NCBI GenBank assembly: GCA_965637545.1
Contig: OZ281495.1
Span: forward strand, 32,674,001 to 32,738,000
Reading direction: 5' to 3'
Length of the DNA: 64,000 nucleotides
Source of the DNA: Phallusia mammillata
Taxonomy: Eukaryota
This document shows, piece after piece, positions 15,001 to 63,500 of the stretch. Both the position numbers and the translations under genes were made by a program. The stretch's first letter is position 1; each line of letters opens with the position of its first letter. The notes beneath the pieces are model-generated. The model was given only the letters and a program-made list of their open reading frames with translations, was not told where the DNA came from and did not search any database.

Positions 15001-18000
15001 TTGGAGGGGCTGATATTGTTCAGTATAACCACTTGCGAATATTGTTTCAGGTTTTCGTGAACGCAGTTGATTCCCGTCGTAAAGTTTTCGGATATTTCGA
15101 ACCTGAAGGCCGAGAGTGGAAAGATGGATTAATTCAACAAATGATCAGACCGCATTGTGTGGAACAAGACGCTCCTACTTCTACAGGGGTGAGTGTATAT
15201 TAATACGGAAATCGTTTGAAGTCCGATTGCTACAAAAACATCTTTATTGGATGGGTAAGTTTCGTCGGGTTCATCACTAAGCCTGTGTAGCTTAGTTTGT
15301 AGAGCGCGAGTCCCGGAAAGACTCCTGTCGTGGGTTAGAACCCCGCCGCAGGCTAGTTTTTTTCTAGCCTATGCCTTACCAAATGGGAATGCTTGGTGAC
15401 CGTCTGATTCGGCACAACGTCTTTAATAGGCCTGGCGTACTTTGATTATTGGGTGATGTTGACTATTTAAGTCATATCATTTTACCCTGGACGTTTAAAA
15501 TGTGCAAGTCTATGTAAGTCTGTCACTAAAACGTGAATATTGAGGACTTGAGGATCATACAGAAATCGTGAACGTTTGTTTAACCCTTGGAAAAAAGATA
15601 TATTCCTTATAGAAGCCTATAGAAAGGCACACCACTTCCAATGCGCCAACTAAATTGCGTTTTCCCCACTAATTAATCACCAAAAGCTCTCAACCTTATT
15701 TGTTCACTTGCAGAGATCCACAAAACCGAGTGTCCTCCTCCTCCATGTTGACGGGAGGATGGAAGCAGAAGATGCCGATATCTTCCTTCAGCTCCTCCGC
15801 TCCGAACCGGGATCAGCTGCATCTGGTGGTCCAACATCCGGACATGTGGGAAGCTCCTCCTGGCTGTCGTTGCCTAACAACGAGAGATTGAATCTTCCTC
15901 TTGATCTCCGCGTCATCTGGGAGGCTGCCGATTTATCATGTCTTGCTCCGAATCTTCTTTCACAACTTGGAGTTCTCGGATTTAGTGGAACTGGTGAGTT
16001 GATAGGAATGGATTGAAAATATGTTACGTTTAACTTGGGCACTGTTCAAATCTGAAACAAGCATGTCATTATCAACTCGACATGGACATTCCAAAGTCCT
16101 GTATGATGACAAAACGATTGGCAAAAATGTTTCTTACAGCTAAATTCTGGATTGGAAAATGAAAACTGTTGAAAACATACACAAATAGAACCAATAAAAC
16201 GTTATTTAAATACCGCGTAAGTTTGAGTAAAAAATAAAGTGTTACGTTTCATGCTGCTCACAGTGCTCAGCAAAGGTTATGGCCTATCACCTCAATCGTA
16301 TACCTTCTGTGCGTCGCATCCCTTCAGTCATTTGGACCTCTGATTAATTTTCAGAACTCAGCTGGGATCTTCATCTCACTCACTGGCTCAAGAACCTTTC
16401 TGACGTCACCCGCTCTTTCACCCATGACGTCATCATGCGTTATCTTCCCCGGCTAGTGACGTTTTTCAACTCTTCGACCACTCCTCCCCACCTCGTCGGC
16501 GACAATGACGTCACGCCCCGATTACGTCAGACCGTGCGCGTCAGTACGTCATCGATGACGTGTACCTTCTGCAAGTTGCTCGATTGTCTGTTGCCGAGTG
16601 ATTCCTCGCCCGTTGAGAGAGAGAGATATGTTGCTTATGGTGCGTTCTGGGCCTTTGGAGGAACTTTGGAGGCGGATTCGAGGGAGCTCTTCTCCTCCTG
16701 GTGGTGCAGGATTTGGCCAAACTCCTTCCCAACTGCCCTCGGTGATCCCTGGCGCCAGTTTGTGGACGCGGAGAGCCGAAACTTCGTCCGCTGGGAGGAG
16801 CACTTGCCGCAGTTTTCTGGTTCCGCTGGTGGTTCGGGAAGTGTGTTCGTTCACACGCCTGACGCGAGTCAACTCATGCATCTGATTGGTGCGCTGATGG
16901 ACGCCGGTCATGCTTCGATGCTCGCCGGTCCGCTCGGGTGTGGCAAGAGCGCCATCGTGCGGGAGCGTGTTAACAACGTGAGCAGTGGTGAAGTGGCGGA
17001 AGTGCTGAGTTTGTTTGTCCATTGTAACCGACTCACGGAGGCTGGGAATTTGTGGACGCGGATTACGGAACATCTCGAATGGAAACATGGAGTCACATTC
17101 ACTCCACGCGGGAACAAGAAGCTGCTTTGTATGGTTGATGACCTCAATCTCGCAAGATCTATTGGATCAGGTGGGTGATAAAATTGTGTTAATTCTGTCA
17201 TTGGTTGATCAGAAAAGTTAGGTGTTAATATGCTGCTGTCGTGGGTTCGAATCCCATCGTAGCCTAGACTTTCTGACCTGCGCTGAGCAATTGCTTAGAA
17301 TCTGAGGCTAATATTCCCTGTAGGCCTAATAGACAATTTCTTTCTCCACATTTTTATCTTTCAATGCTTCTCTTTTACTTTCAGAAGGTGAATCCCCCAA
17401 CCTGCAATCAGCTTGTGAATTGGTTCGTCAACATCTTGACGTGGGAGGAGTAAGGAATCCTGTCACCTATAAATGGCAGCAGGTATAACAACAAAACTGC
17501 AACACTTAAGTGCTTGTGGCAGATACAACTATATAGCTCATATATATTTTACAAATCTTCAAAAAGTTGGTGTTTTGTGGTGGCAACAATTGTGTTAGTG
17601 ATGATTTTACATGTTCAACAGTAAGGGTATGCTATTTGGTGCGTTTATACCCTGGTAAAGAGGTCACAAAGAAGAAGTCGACACGCCGAATAATAAAGAT
17701 AAAATTGCCGCAAAAACAACGATAGTTAGAATGTCCTGCCTAGCAACGAGGTACTATTATTCGCAGGTTAGCAACACCGCTTACGTCACAACGATCAATC
17801 CCCGGCCCTTCTCGTGTTCAAATGTGATGAGTCAGCGCATGACGAGGCACTTCTCGGTCTTTTCGTGCCCGTATCCGTCCGTTGCCACGCAACACTCCAT
17901 TTTCAGGTAAGTAAACAACATTACTTGGGGTAGAAGTTGTGACTTTGTAAACGTCCATTTCTTTTTCCGCAGCACACTCATACAAAGTCGGTTGCTTCTC

Positions 18001-60500: not shown

Positions 60501-63500
60501 GTTTACACTTAAAAACAGAGTAAATGCCCCAAAACAGTGATTTTTTAATCTACACTTTACCAAGAAGCAGTGGCTACTTTGTTCCTCAAAAAATATGTTT
60601 TTCAAACTTACCACATGTTGTCCAGTAATATTACGATTAGTTTCATCTGCAGCAGCAGGCATCGGAGCAACCATTGCCACTGGTGGTACGGTGGGTGCTG
60701 TATGTGTTGCAGGTGGTACAGGTGGTGCATGTGGTACAGGTGGTTCGGGTGGTACAGGTGTTGGAAGTGCTGCGTGGGCTGTATGTGTTGGTAAAGTAGT
60801 TGTTACAGCAGGTGCAGATGCAATTACAGATGATGAAGGGATCTGCTGGCTCTGAAAACAACAGCGCAAAAATTGAAACCGTGTGGTTCAAACCTTATTT
60901 GAGAAGGAAATGAAACAGGTAACTAATACTTTTCTTTAGTCAAGGCATTTTGTGAAGTGGACAAAACTACAAAACAAAATATACACAAGCATAAACTTCT
61001 GATATTATTCGTGCCAGTGAGGGGGTGATAAAAAATCTTCGTCCTAATTCGGACAAAACTTGAGGTACAAATGATTTGTAATGTGGTAAGACTTTAACTA
61101 ATCGACATCGGTTAATCTGGATCTTCACCAATCCGGACAAATTGTTTGGGTCCTAACAGGTCCAGATTAACCAAGGTTTTCTGTATTTTTCGACTAAAAC
61201 ATGCAACCAGTTACAAGTTAAAAATGCAAGTATTTTATTCCCACCTCAGCTTCTGTGCTGGTCGTCTCCACGGCAACAGGGAGTTGGATGGGTTGCTGGA
61301 ACAACATCGGTCGTTGTGCGCCGTACATCGGAGCAATCGAAGGAAGCATCATCAAGCGAGGAGCAGCTTGTCCGCTTGCGTCGCTCGTCGGCAACACAAC
61401 ACAGTAAGGCACAGCTGTTCCATCTCCTGTTGCACAAGTATTTCATGGTTATTCGCAAATGCATAACCAACAACCTGCTATTTGTGAAATTATAGGTTTT
61501 CTGATACTAGAAAGGTGGCTTTCTGATATATTTCCATTTAATATTTATTCTATCTCCTTTTTACCAATTTACTATACACATCATTTGCTCCACATATATG
61601 GTTGTTTTTGCAAACAAAAATGAATGGGTTCCCTCACTTGAAGTGGGGAAACCTAGCATTATCCAAGAAATCTCCAATATACTATAACTCTACATTAGTT
61701 TTCATTCTGTTAAGATGAATAACTGGGATCAGCCTTGAAGTGTTCATGCAGACCAGCTATCACAGCACACTCATATGTAAATCACAGTATGCCAGGCCCA
61801 TTGAAGGCATTACATGAAAACACCTTCTATGGGTCTGGCAAACTATGAGTTTTTAATAGAAAAATAATTTGTAATTGAAGCTTTCAACCATAAACAATGT
61901 CAATGTTGCATGCAACAAATAATTTTCCTCACCTTGAGGCATCAAATATTGTAATACTGGTGTGTTTGGGTACATCATAGGCAGTCGTGGTGCAGCGTTA
62001 GCGAAAAACAATGGTGCTTGTGGCTGATTCTGGGCCACAGGGTTGACCATGACATGCTGTGAACTGCCAGCAGTTGCAACATGCGATGGATGGCCAGCAT
62101 ATACCACTGTAGAGTGGGCAGAGGGTGGAACACCGGCAACCATGTTCTGTGCTTGCTGGTCTGAAATAACAAATACATAATAAGTTTAGAAAATGATGGT
62201 GTTTTTATTACTTTAATATTTATTTTTTAAAAACAAACACAAAACTTTTCAAACTTTTTTTTTTCTTGTCACAATAATTAATCACAGTATATATATATTG
62301 CAACTGTGTCTATTGGTAACGAGTCTTATTTAATGGTTTATTGGTAACCAGAAAAGAGCATTAAATGCAAAACAATTCAATCAAAATATTTCAGTTCTGA
62401 TGTGGTCTGTTACAAGGAAAAAAAGTAAAAAGTATTTCTTATTCCTCTAAGAATCGAAATTTTAATATTAAGCTACATCTCTCGGTAGCATATGTCAGTT
62501 AACAGTTTGTTGGTAACATAGTAAAAGCATTAAACACAAAAAAATCATTTAAAATCTACATGTTTGCTACTCCACTACTATGCACTGTAACATTAGCCAA
62601 ACCTACTGAAACATATATGTAGTTCTTCGGGAAAAATCAATTATAGCGCATTAGTGTGGTATCATTAGGTATTAATTAGGAATCAAGGAGCAAAGGTCAG
62701 TCAGACAAAAAGTAAAATGTAAAAGTTTCCTGTCACTATAAATTGTTAAATTCAACCAGTTTCACTCCAATTGTGGAAAACATTTCGCAGTTGTGAAAAA
62801 CTTTTGTTACATCAGTCATAACTGGAAAATGAAAACAATGCTTTGTAGTATTTACAAGCTTGTCAAACACCTATGCTGTTTTCCACTCTTATTCAAAGCT
62901 TAAATATTTTTCCTTAAATCACACAACCTAAATTACACCTAAATATCTAACTTACATCAACCCTGAATTCAGCTTCATCAAAACCAGGTAACTAACAAAT
63001 TAACAGAAAGCATTTTGTTAAAAAAACATGTAATATTTGGCATTGGCACAAAAATACAATTGCCAGAATACCTTGATAAAGTTGATATTATGGCCGGCAG
63101 CAACAGCTTATATATTTAACTTAATTTCCCAACCTTTTGTGAGCTTTACCCATGAAATATTTTTGTCAAAACCAAGTTACAAAAACAATTAAAAACTTAC
63201 CCAAGGCCCGGACTTGAGCTGCTACAGAGAGCAAAGCATCCAAGTTTGTCTGCGATTCAGCTCGGCTTCTTGGAGGGTTTGGAACATGTTGAGAATGTTC
63301 GGGGGTCGGGTTCTCAACTTTATAACTGGCTGCTTGTTGCCCTCTAGTGTCCAAAACATGAGGAGCAGGTGCGGATAACGGTTGGGCGACAGGATCGTGG
63401 CCACCACCACTCTTGTACATTTGCCACGTCGAGCTGCTCGTTGGTTTGTCAAGGTTCGGAGCAGGATGAATTGACGTGGGAAGTTTGTTTGAATTCATCG

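Follow-up and report, generated by a model that had tools for sequence, protein, structure and literature searches.

Penelope-like elements (PLEs; Penelope/Poseidon, Neptune and Naiad/Chlamys, with the non-autonomous MRC1 of Chlamydomonas) are among the nearest named systems to the repeat described here. Their insertions are characterized by 5' truncation, an adjoining inverted 5'-truncated copy, a "tail" at one end only, and cleavage at AT-rich sites (PMC8557442, PMC3846280, PMC11167929). Described PLE inserts carry an inverted pLTR, a 31-bp tail, and TSDs of 8-10 bp such as GAATTAAT, and pLTRs alone suffice in trans (PMC3846280). A PLE protein cleaves both DNA strands at AT-rich sites and extends them, and reverse transcription has two internal starts on a multi-copy RNA, the stretch between them becoming the tail (PMC11167929). 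Animal retrozymes, which are thought to be PLE dependent (bioRxiv 10.64898/2026.07.22.740005), are units of 150-450 bp with low GC content and TSDs of >4 bp (PMC7229834). The SM-alpha and Sj-alpha elements of schistosomes are SINE-like retroposons of ~335 bp, found both dispersed and in tandem (PMC8490949), and Helenus (TRIMp3), present in animals, has the arrangement LTR-PBS-PPT-LTR with 4-5-bp TSDs (PMC10886601).

We analyzed a stretch of 64,000 nt from Phallusia mammillata, referred to as the window (GCA_965637545.1, OZ281495.1, positions 32,674,001-32,738,000, forward strand), and found eight copies (A to H) and two fragments of a very abundant short mobile element with an internal tRNA-like gene. 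The copies available in these 64 kb are few (n = 8), and three of their TSDs are weak or missing. For a genome-wide picture, contigs of three DNA runs were matched to the repeat; summed contig depth, a crude gauge of copy number and of 5' truncation, was ~2,000-3,000 times the single-copy depth. The repeat sequence was also present in assembled contigs of one RNA run, and no copy of it was detected in the public sequence collections scanned.

Table 1. Copies and fragments of the repeat, and the hammerhead motif, in the window
Feature	Position	Strand	Structure	TSD
Copy A	15251..15445	+	direct, 5'-truncated: upstream stub of ~30 nt, tRNA-like module (15281-15354), tail	TTATTGG, 15244-15250 / 15446-15452; weak, p 0.13
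Copy B	28525..28817	-	direct, near full-length: diverged X', leader, tRNA-like module with D-arm deletion, tail	AATTTAAT, 8 nt, 28517-28524 / 28818-28825; p 0.05
Copy C	34864..35082	+	inverted extension of X and 15 nt of e', with 21 nt between its joint and tRNA-like module (34938-35011, 58.8 bits), 3'-truncated tail	possible, TCAATGG; p 0.07
Copy D	35420..35711	+	direct, full-length: X' (36 nt), leader (98 nt), tRNA-like module (35554-35621), diverged tail stopping 8 nt before the usual end	ACTGCTACTT, exact, 10 nt, 35405-35414 / 35712-35721; reached in 0/300 shuffles
Copy E	38029..38275	-	foldback: partial X, whole inverted tail, 3' half of tRNA-like module (38125-38175), direct tail; 240-nt palindrome, 81.7% (self-inverted match)	TCTTTCACAA, exact, 10 nt, 38015-38024 / 38276-38285; reached in 0/300 shuffles; extends to 14 nt with 2 mismatches
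Copy F	48777..49115	-	13 nt of e', inverted tail (~48-60 nt), 4-nt filler, last 69 nt of leader, tRNA-like module (48885-48959, 49.9 bits), full tail	none convincing in the flanks
Copy G	60350..60485	-	lacks tRNA-like module: X, e', short inverted tail piece, ~15 nt, last 22 nt of direct tail	AATTAAACA, exact, 9 nt, 60341-60349 / 60486-60494; p 0.02
Copy H	61703..61844	+	architecture of G: X, e', inverted tail (31 nt), 15-nt filler, last ~27 nt of direct tail; inner junction differs from that of G	ATTAGTTTT / ATGAGTTTT, 9 nt, 1 mismatch, 61694-61702 / 61845-61853; alone not significant
Old fragment	17233..17283	+	3' part of tRNA-like module and start of tail	
Short fragment	36024..36052	+	match to T-arm of tRNA-like module; may be a chance match or an old remnant	
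Hammerhead	47458-47510		complete core, 30.2 bits, E 6e-4, in a partial tandem	

Chaining the modules mapped in the eight copies gives a non-coding unit of 349 nt with GC <50%, in the order X' (36 nt), leader (~98 nt), tRNA-like module plus T5 (75 nt), tail (~95 nt), extension e (~45 nt), and X' again. Four tRNA-like modules scored at or above the Rfam gathering threshold for tRNA (42.5-58.8 bits); the A and B boxes are intact and the cloverleaf pairing is kept, one acceptor pair varying among U-A, U-G, and C-G between copies; conservation of this module was 90%, versus 78% for the tail. In A, B, D, E, and F a run of T5-T7 comes immediately after the module, and the genome-wide consensus has T5 at this point. 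As the original prediction had it, the tRNA-like part sits away from the 5' end: B and D, full-length copies delimited by TSDs, have it starting ~135 nt from that end. The leader said to be common to B, D, and F was likewise recovered, B and D matching over 237 nt at 79%, of which ~115 nt lie upstream of the cloverleaf, and F sharing ~69-75 nt. The stated absence of a hammerhead also held, since the repeat copies gave no match even at E values up to 1, nor any match to another Rfam ribozyme. Predicted RNA folding was no better than that of shuffled sequences (z -0.9 to +0.2), and in none of the eight copies was a cloverleaf boundary the start or end of the copy. The tRNA-like module is probably neither a decoder nor a unit boundary and is probably kept for a role in source copies, such as Pol III/TFIIIC binding or RNA recognition.

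The 3' ends of the copies are nearly constant. The tail ends at ...CTGTGATT(T), followed at once by the TSD, in A, B, E, and F, and six of the eight copies end within ~4 nt of this point, the exceptions being D and the 3'-truncated C; there is no A-rich or simple-repeat tail, as the TSD begins immediately after ...GATTT. Genome-wide, most copies end ...CTGTGATTT and then enter AT-rich unique DNA: past the tail end the sequence turned AT-rich and lost conservation in hundreds of contigs from each DNA run (104-188 for each place and run). Continuation of the tail into the extension, as described earlier, is a minority form. The 5' ends, on the other hand, differ among A, E, F, G, and H, and depth in contigs climbs roughly from leader to tail, as 5' truncation predicts, and the tRNA-like module plus tail is the majority form by depth in the contigs of the DNA runs. 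TSDs are variable (7-14 nt) and enclose whole composites, including the inverted arm (D 10, E 10-14, G 9, and B 8 nt). Copy ends had been put forward as a test of the original prediction; in the eight copies, starts did not fall at the cloverleaf, and fixed TIRs with TSDs of fixed length were not observed.

In E, F, G, and H, the upstream stretch of tail, previously taken for a permuted part of the unit, is actually the reverse complement of the tail. Such inverted arms occur in five of the eight copies (C, E, F, G, and H, with C having the extension only), and in all five the inverted arm bears the e-X' extension (~80 nt), which is never found on a direct arm; the direct arm ends at the usual tail end in four of them, C being 3'-truncated. 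The extension is missing from all three direct copies (A, B, and D). The recurrent joints in DNA-run contigs were of the X-e'-inverted-tail type, together with short foldbacks, and the reverse complement of e abutted the inverted tail at one place in 62-73 contigs per run, a minority form. Because A and C share a stub junction, which defines an A/C subfamily, at least some "inverted-tail" structures descend from a source copy and did not arise anew with each insertion, a point against the Penelope-type reading.

The continuity of tail and extension claimed for two places was confirmed at G (60386-60464) and H (61719-61797), both of which read tail-extension-X' (84.8% over 79 nt), and the end of the extension does match the start of the D leader (35418-35455 versus 60444-60482, 87% of 39 nt, E 2.7e-7). 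In the direct copies B and D, X' is the 5'-most part, and in C, G, and H it closes the extension at its far end; in every case it lies within the TSDs. With X' found at both ends, the template must exceed one unit, be it a tandem, a partial tandem, or a circle. The short ATCACAGTA motif occurs at both X' and the tail end. The X'-leader junction, as in D, is rare, with a depth of ~5,900 versus 264,000 twenty bases further in. No copy in the window has a contiguous tail-extension-leader, and permutation is inferred from two overlaps; of the circular or tandem unit of ~350 nt that had been proposed, the length (349 nt) and the terminal redundancy stand in the geometry, while the contiguous form was absent from the window.

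Taken together, the one-sided extension of ~80 nt, the 5' truncation, the AT-rich targets, and a terminally redundant template match a Penelope-like signature, and we conclude with moderate confidence that the repeat is a high-copy non-autonomous retroposon inserted Penelope-style from a template of ~350-nt units. New copies would arise by PLE-like target-primed reverse transcription, a PLE enzyme cutting AT-rich DNA with a variable stagger to yield TSDs of 7-14 nt. Reverse transcription would usually start at an internal site, the tail end (...CTGTGATTT), and more rarely ~80 nt further 3', at the X' end, with cDNAs often 5'-truncated. Priming by both target strands would give a direct copy and an adjoining inverted 5'-truncated copy, with e-X' extending the inverted arm as its "tail". 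What looks like circular permutation would be terminal redundancy, a template of more than one unit having X' at either end, and transcription may proceed from an upstream partial copy. Penelope-type partial-tandem insertion, which the original prediction had suggested, is thus the best-fitting hypothesis and its insertion hallmarks are present, although no contiguous partial tandem of the repeat was seen in the window.

The repeat resembles PLEs in its 5' truncation, adjoining inverted copy, one-end extension, terminal redundancy, and 8-14-nt TSDs in AT-rich DNA, and trans action on a short non-coding cargo would be a further likeness (PMC8557442, PMC3846280, PMC11167929). Unlike PLEs, it has no RT/GIY-YIG ORF and no hammerhead, has a tRNA-like Pol III module inside, and bears a longer extension. 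The extension measures ~80 nt, compared to the 30-40 bp described for PLEs, which speaks against the PLE reading. Among the window ORFs there was no RT plus GIY-YIG element, the repeat copies contained neither an ORF nor an ORF remnant, and neither the window ORFs nor the public collections scanned yielded an autonomous PLE with the tail, e, or X' in common. A PLE-associated motif does lie in the same window, namely the hammerhead listed in Table 1; the hammerhead unit (47430-47830) showed no similarity to the repeat.

An ordinary tRNA-derived SINE, with a LINE recognizing the 3' end of the tail, is a possible though unlikely explanation, under which inverted arms, extensions, and forms with a leader would be by-products of twin priming, of switches between SINE RNA templates, of read-through transcripts, or of later rearrangement. 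SINE-like traits are the A and B boxes, both intact, of the tRNA-related module, the many copies, TSDs of unequal length, and genic enrichment, together with the module-plus-tail majority by depth and a module better conserved than the tail, in the manner of SINE heads; moreover, a LINE with specific 3' recognition could account for the fixed 3' end along with variable TSDs and AT-rich DNA. Yet the Pol III terminator (T5-T7) directly after the module would halt transcription before the tail, B and D begin ~135 nt upstream of the module and inside their TSDs, and the tail is neither A-rich nor a simple repeat; the repeat is therefore not a classical Pol III SINE. The frequent inverted and extended forms, with one conserved 80-nt extension on the inverted arms of five of the eight copies, point the same way: the shared extension argues against locus-specific read-through, twin priming on a single RNA would invert upstream sequence and not the 3' end, and such structures are absent from LINE-type insertion (PMC8557442). 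A MITE or foldback DNA transposon, with the tail and its reverse complement as TIRs and the tRNA-like module as cargo, is very improbable. Inverted repeats of 25-95 nt do lie between direct repeats in E, F, G, and H, and the ATCACAGTA motif at X' and the tail end would suit it, but TSD length is not fixed (7, 8, 9, 10, and 14 nt), no left inverted arm accompanies the TSDs of A, B, and D, the left end reaches ~80 nt past the inverted repeat on one side only, and inner junctions vary between copies. The description of the repeat as neither a normal SINE nor a MITE accordingly holds, in view of the internal cloverleaf with T5-T7 behind it, the missing A-tail, the variable TSDs, and the optional asymmetric inverted arms.

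TSDs of 7-14 nt argue against an LTR element as well as a MITE. We consider least credible a Helenus-type TRIM, a small LTR element with the tRNA-like sequence in its LTRs, in which the "permutation" would be LTR-internal-LTR. Helenus is known in animals and, like the repeat, has a tRNA-like sequence within the repeated part of a small non-autonomous retroelement (PMC10886601), and the apparent terminal redundancy fits; however, the repeat has no two LTRs, PBS, or PPT, its 7-14-nt TSDs surround single units in place of the 4-5 bp of Helenus (PMC10886601), a copy with two LTRs is absent from the window, and a TRIM would not be expected to have inverted arms. The repeat is probably a ribozyme-free relative of the animal retrozymes. 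Like animal non-LTR retrozymes, it is a non-coding unit of ~350 nt with GC <50% and TSDs of >4 bp, and a partial tandem with a hammerhead shares its window; unlike them, it lacks a type I hammerhead in every copy and is dispersed and truncated in the window rather than arranged in long tandem arrays. Retrozymes are reported to be depleted from introns, whereas copies C, D, and E are all intronic, C in an intron of a minus-strand gene. SM-alpha and Sj-alpha carry an active type I hammerhead where the repeat has none, and the likeness to them is one of description. They reportedly also contain Pol III box-like sequences (Ferbeyre et al., 1998).

A ribozyme-free retrozyme proper, in which a tandem transcript is cut at the cloverleaf by RNase P and RNase Z and a ~275-nt spacer or the monomer is circularized for rolling-circle reverse transcription, seems to us improbable. 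The 349-nt unit with terminal redundancy falls within the size range of animal retrozymes, 150-450 bp (PMC7229834), and the cloverleaf keeps its pairing through the U-A, U-G, and C-G variants of one acceptor pair. Nevertheless, the copies contain no hammerhead or other Rfam ribozyme, folding energies are unremarkable against shuffles, and copy ends never coincide with the cloverleaf boundary, which leaves the RNase P/RNase Z idea without support. RNase P and RNase Z products have 5'-phosphate and 3'-OH ends, and RtcB joins other ends. That tandem or partial-tandem units are transcribed and the module recruits RNase P/Z (or La or TFIIIC) instead of a hammerhead, with a unit-length or circular RNA copied by a Penelope-like RT, is similarly doubtful.

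Genome annotation will be affected: tRNA-like hits in their thousands, each with a Pol III terminator, together with foldbacks beside exons and inverted pairs flanking them, will blur tRNA gene counts, the classification of repeats, and assembly from short reads. Were the RNase P/RNase Z reading true, a host tRNA-processing signal would replace self-cleavage in the life cycle of a retroelement. If Penelope-type insertion is correct, a non-coding, hammerhead-free element bearing a tRNA-like sequence would have reached thousands of copies via the PLE machinery, placing it between SINEs, defined by their LINE partners, and retrozymes, defined by their ribozyme. PLE trans-mobilization would then require neither a ribozyme nor a coding remnant, and the tail with its 80-nt extension would be a short natural substrate for questions of PLE RT recognition and start sites.

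Self-comparison of the window, which has a GC content of about 0.40, is eukaryotic, and contains spliced genes, revealed eight copies (A to H) and two small fragments of one repeat family, while four tRNA-like modules were detected with ARAGORN and Rfam. Five modules, defined in the orientation of the tRNA-like part, were located on every copy by script: X' (36 nt, first bases CAGGGCTGATCACAG); the leader L (about 98 nt); the tRNA-like module R (75 nt); the tail t (about 95 nt), with a T5-T7 run at its start and GGCGTACTGTGATTT at its end; and the extension e (about 45 nt). Reverse complements are written X (of X'), e' (of e), and t' (of t). 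The original prediction of a unit of about 350 nt agrees with the chained modules, which amount to 349 nt, and the leader common to B, D, and F was confirmed by self-comparison. The tails of G and H, 84.8% alike over 79 nt, do run on into e and X', and the end of this continuation is the start of the D leader, evident by the match of X' to the first 36 to 39 nt of D (87%, E 2.7e-7). Tail and leader are linked in this way via two overlaps, t-e-X' and X'-L; however, the tail stops at GATTT in most copies, and none of the copies in the window has t-e-X'-L in one piece. Upstream tail-like sequence in E, F, G, and H, previously considered permuted, is actually inverted, with E forming a 240-nt palindrome. 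The tandem or circular geometry holds only so far that the template of the family, judging from these sequences, must be longer than one unit.

Window positions, composition, and target-site duplications (TSDs) of the repeat copies, and positions of neighboring features; numbers in parentheses are nt
Feature	Position	Strand	Composition	TSD	Test against shuffled flanks
Copy A	15251..15445	+	short stub-R-t	7 nt	weak
R of copy A	15281-15355				
Copy B	28525..28817	-	X'-L-R-t	AATTTAAT, 8 nt	p 0.05
Contig placement region	34600-38500				
Copy C	34864..35082	+	X-e'(15)-L(21)-R-t; t 3'-truncated	7 nt	weak
R of copy C	34938-35012				
Copy D	35420..35711	+	X'-L-R-t	ACTGCTACTT, 10 nt	0/300 shuffles
Palindromic MITE-like repeat	36604-36695		CCAGTGGT...ACCACTGG		
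Copy E	38029..38275	-	X(part)-t'-R(3' half)-t	TCTTTCACAA, 10 nt; 14 nt with 2 mismatches	0/300 shuffles
Foldback E with TSD	38029-38289				
Exon edge near E	38303	-			
Hammerhead unit	47430-47830				
Hammerhead	47458-47510		CUGAUGAG...CGAAAC		
Degenerate second hammerhead	about 47745-47790				
Copy F	48777..49115	-	e'(13)-t'(about 50-60)-L(69)-R-t	none found	
R of copy F	48884-48959				
Copy G	60350..60485	-	X-e'-t'(about 17-31)-filler-t(22-27)	AATTAAACA, 9 nt	p 0.02
Exon-like open frame	60480-60869	-			
Copy H	61703..61844	+	X-e'-t'(about 17-31)-filler-t(22-27)	9 nt, one mismatch	alone not significant

Inverted arms are present in five of the eight copies, and the module map revealed that inner junctions vary between copies. 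A and C have one stub junction in common, and therefore some of the inverted-extension structures were inherited from source copies. To define insertion marks, direct repeats at the homology boundaries were compared with shuffled flanks. The TSDs flank entire composites, with the inverted arm and extension inside, and these parts were therefore inserted together with the rest of the copy. The TSDs of D and E begin with bases that resemble those missing from the element at that end, as would be expected if the nicked target primes on the RNA. The variable TSD length argues against a DNA transposon, in keeping with the original view that the repeat is not a MITE; an integrase-type LTR element is disfavored on the same grounds. 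Helenus TRIMs, which have tRNA-like LTRs, carry 4-5-bp TSDs with a PBS and PPT (PMC10886601) versus the variable 7-14-nt TSDs here, and twin priming on a single RNA was rejected because it would invert upstream sequence, not the 3' end.

Logan contigs from this organism (three DNA runs and a single RNA run) were placed on the region surrounding C, D, and E at ≥80% likeness. In each of the three DNA runs, summed word depth in the R and t bins, a crude measure of copy number, was about 2,000-3,000 times that of flanking single-copy sequence; between 8,800 and 18,000 contigs were placed, many of them >95% alike, and the family therefore numbers at least in the thousands, with some copies being young. 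After the truncated tail of C, 104-188 contigs at each place in each run read ...GGCCTGGCGTACTGTGATTT, beyond which the sequence is AT-rich and agrees poorly; the family has a fixed 3' end adjoining unique AT-rich DNA. The reverse complement of e directly precedes the inverted tail of E in 62-73 contigs per run, so the t-to-e continuity is real but a minority form, and X-e'-t' forms and short foldbacks recur among contig joints and inserted letters. From about 5,900 where X' meets L in D, depth climbed to about 264,000 over the final 65 nt of L and was higher still in R and t, a gradient that fits heavy 5' truncation, with full-length D-type copies being rare. By the same placement, C, D, and E sit in introns of one minus-strand gene, whose exons are visible in an RNA contig; foldback E with its TSD ends about 13 nt from an exon edge, very near a splice site. 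A separate palindromic MITE-like repeat of about 92 nt, with no Rfam match, reached a summed contig depth about 10,000-fold that of single-copy sequence in each of the three DNA runs, above that of the tRNA-like family.

R has good A and B boxes, as a SINE mobilized by a partner LINE would, along with a near-canonical cloverleaf and a 7-nt anticodon loop (CCGGAAA). However, the T5-T7 run lies directly after R (T5 in the genome-wide consensus), so Pol III transcription from R would terminate ahead of the tail, which defines the 3' end of the copies. Full-length TSD-bounded copies begin about 135 nt upstream of R, and the tail is neither A-rich nor simple-repeat. Together with the inverted arms, these features make LINE mobilization the less likely reading, and the internal R, terminator run, tail, and arms uphold the earlier view that this is not a normal SINE. 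Penelope-type insertion, also proposed originally, is the best fit and, in our judgment, somewhat probable: it accommodates two apparent start sites, one-sided extension, variable inner junctions, AT-rich insertion targets, and X' at both ends of the inferred template. Reverse transcription would usually start at the end of t; a second start, some 80 nt farther 3', would coincide with the end of X' or, in E and F, fall a few bases short of it. The extension is restricted to the inverted arm in all five copies having such an arm; as random use of two sites would give this mixed arrangement at most half the time, the p value is about 0.03 or less.

Insertions of Penelope-like elements (PLEs) are 5'-truncated and often partial tandems; frequently, an inverted 5'-truncated copy immediately precedes the insertion, and one end, but not the other, bears a "tail" of 30-40 bp (PMC8557442). 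In Adineta vaga, inserts with an inverted pseudo-LTR (pLTR) have TSDs of 8-10 bp, and one inverted pLTR bears a tail of 31 bp; pLTRs need no other element sequence to carry unrelated cargo in trans (PMC3846280). When purified, a PLE protein was active on both DNA strands at AT-rich sites, cutting and extending each, with reverse transcription beginning at two internal sites of a multi-copy RNA, the stretch between them being the "tail" (PMC11167929). Compared to these tails, the extension in our family is longer. No autonomous partner was found in the 64-kb window, which has no RT open reading frame (ORF); a spurious ORF through copy F gave no candidates in a protein collection. Rfam at permissive thresholds detected only tRNA, and no ribozyme, over the copies; hammerhead-free PLE clades, Naiad and Chlamys, are known (PMC8557442). 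Elsewhere in the window, a hammerhead with a complete catalytic core matched Rfam Hammerhead_3 (30.2 bits, E 6e-4, below the gathering score), and a degenerate second hammerhead follows after about 290 nt. The arrangement is a partial tandem whose unit is retrozyme-like or PLE pLTR-like, and PLE-linked motifs are thus present in the P. mammillata genome; the unit has no similarity to the tRNA-like family.

The proposal that the cloverleaf serves as an RNase P/Z signal in place of a ribozyme found no support. None of the eight copies in the window begins or ends at a cloverleaf boundary, and folding of tail-extension and leader-tRNA-tail sequences against shuffles gave no unusually stable or rod-like structure (z of -0.12, +0.24, and -0.91). 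The idea is not refuted, because PLE insertion in vitro does not require ribozyme cleavage either (PMC11167929). Mean pairwise identity among copies is 90% for R, 89% for L, and 78% for t. By eye, the composition of one acceptor-stem pair differs among copies (U-A for C and D; C-G for F; U-G for A), and pairing is apparently kept across subfamilies; a covariation test of the cloverleaf, with too few sequences, called no compensatory pair. Conservation of R and this variation suggest selection for the module on source copies, where R likely acts as a Pol III/TFIIIC site or as an RNA fold aiding expression or recognition. The 3' acceptor strand can alternatively pair with sequence past the T-run (AGGCTAGA-UUUU-UCUAGCCU), placing the terminator in a hairpin loop.

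The nearest known elements are PLE pLTR structures, the non-autonomous elements derived from them (animal retrozymes, MRC1), and the SINE-like SM-alpha family; unlike these, our family lacks a hammerhead and contains a complete tRNA-like Pol III unit. A literature search, exact sequence strings included, found no description of such an element, although this does not prove that none exists. When the anticodon-arm and tail-end motifs were scanned as exact patterns, metagenome contigs gave 0 and 0 matches, viral contigs likewise gave 0 and 0, and two matches in prokaryotic genomes were chance 20-mers in unrelated bacterial sequence. The best homologues of window ORFs were ORF fragments of relatives (66-73% identical). 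One relative's dynein heavy-chain locus (ENA contig ctg13683l, 415551-436237; 20.7 kb; 72% protein identity in one exon), with RVT_1 and RNase H ORFs nearby, contains no copy of the family and no tRNA match. The family is possibly confined to a narrower lineage. Within the window, 1.2 kb separates G from H, which are oppositely oriented and flank an exon-like open frame; this inverted pair could base-pair in pre-mRNA and influence splicing or back-splicing.
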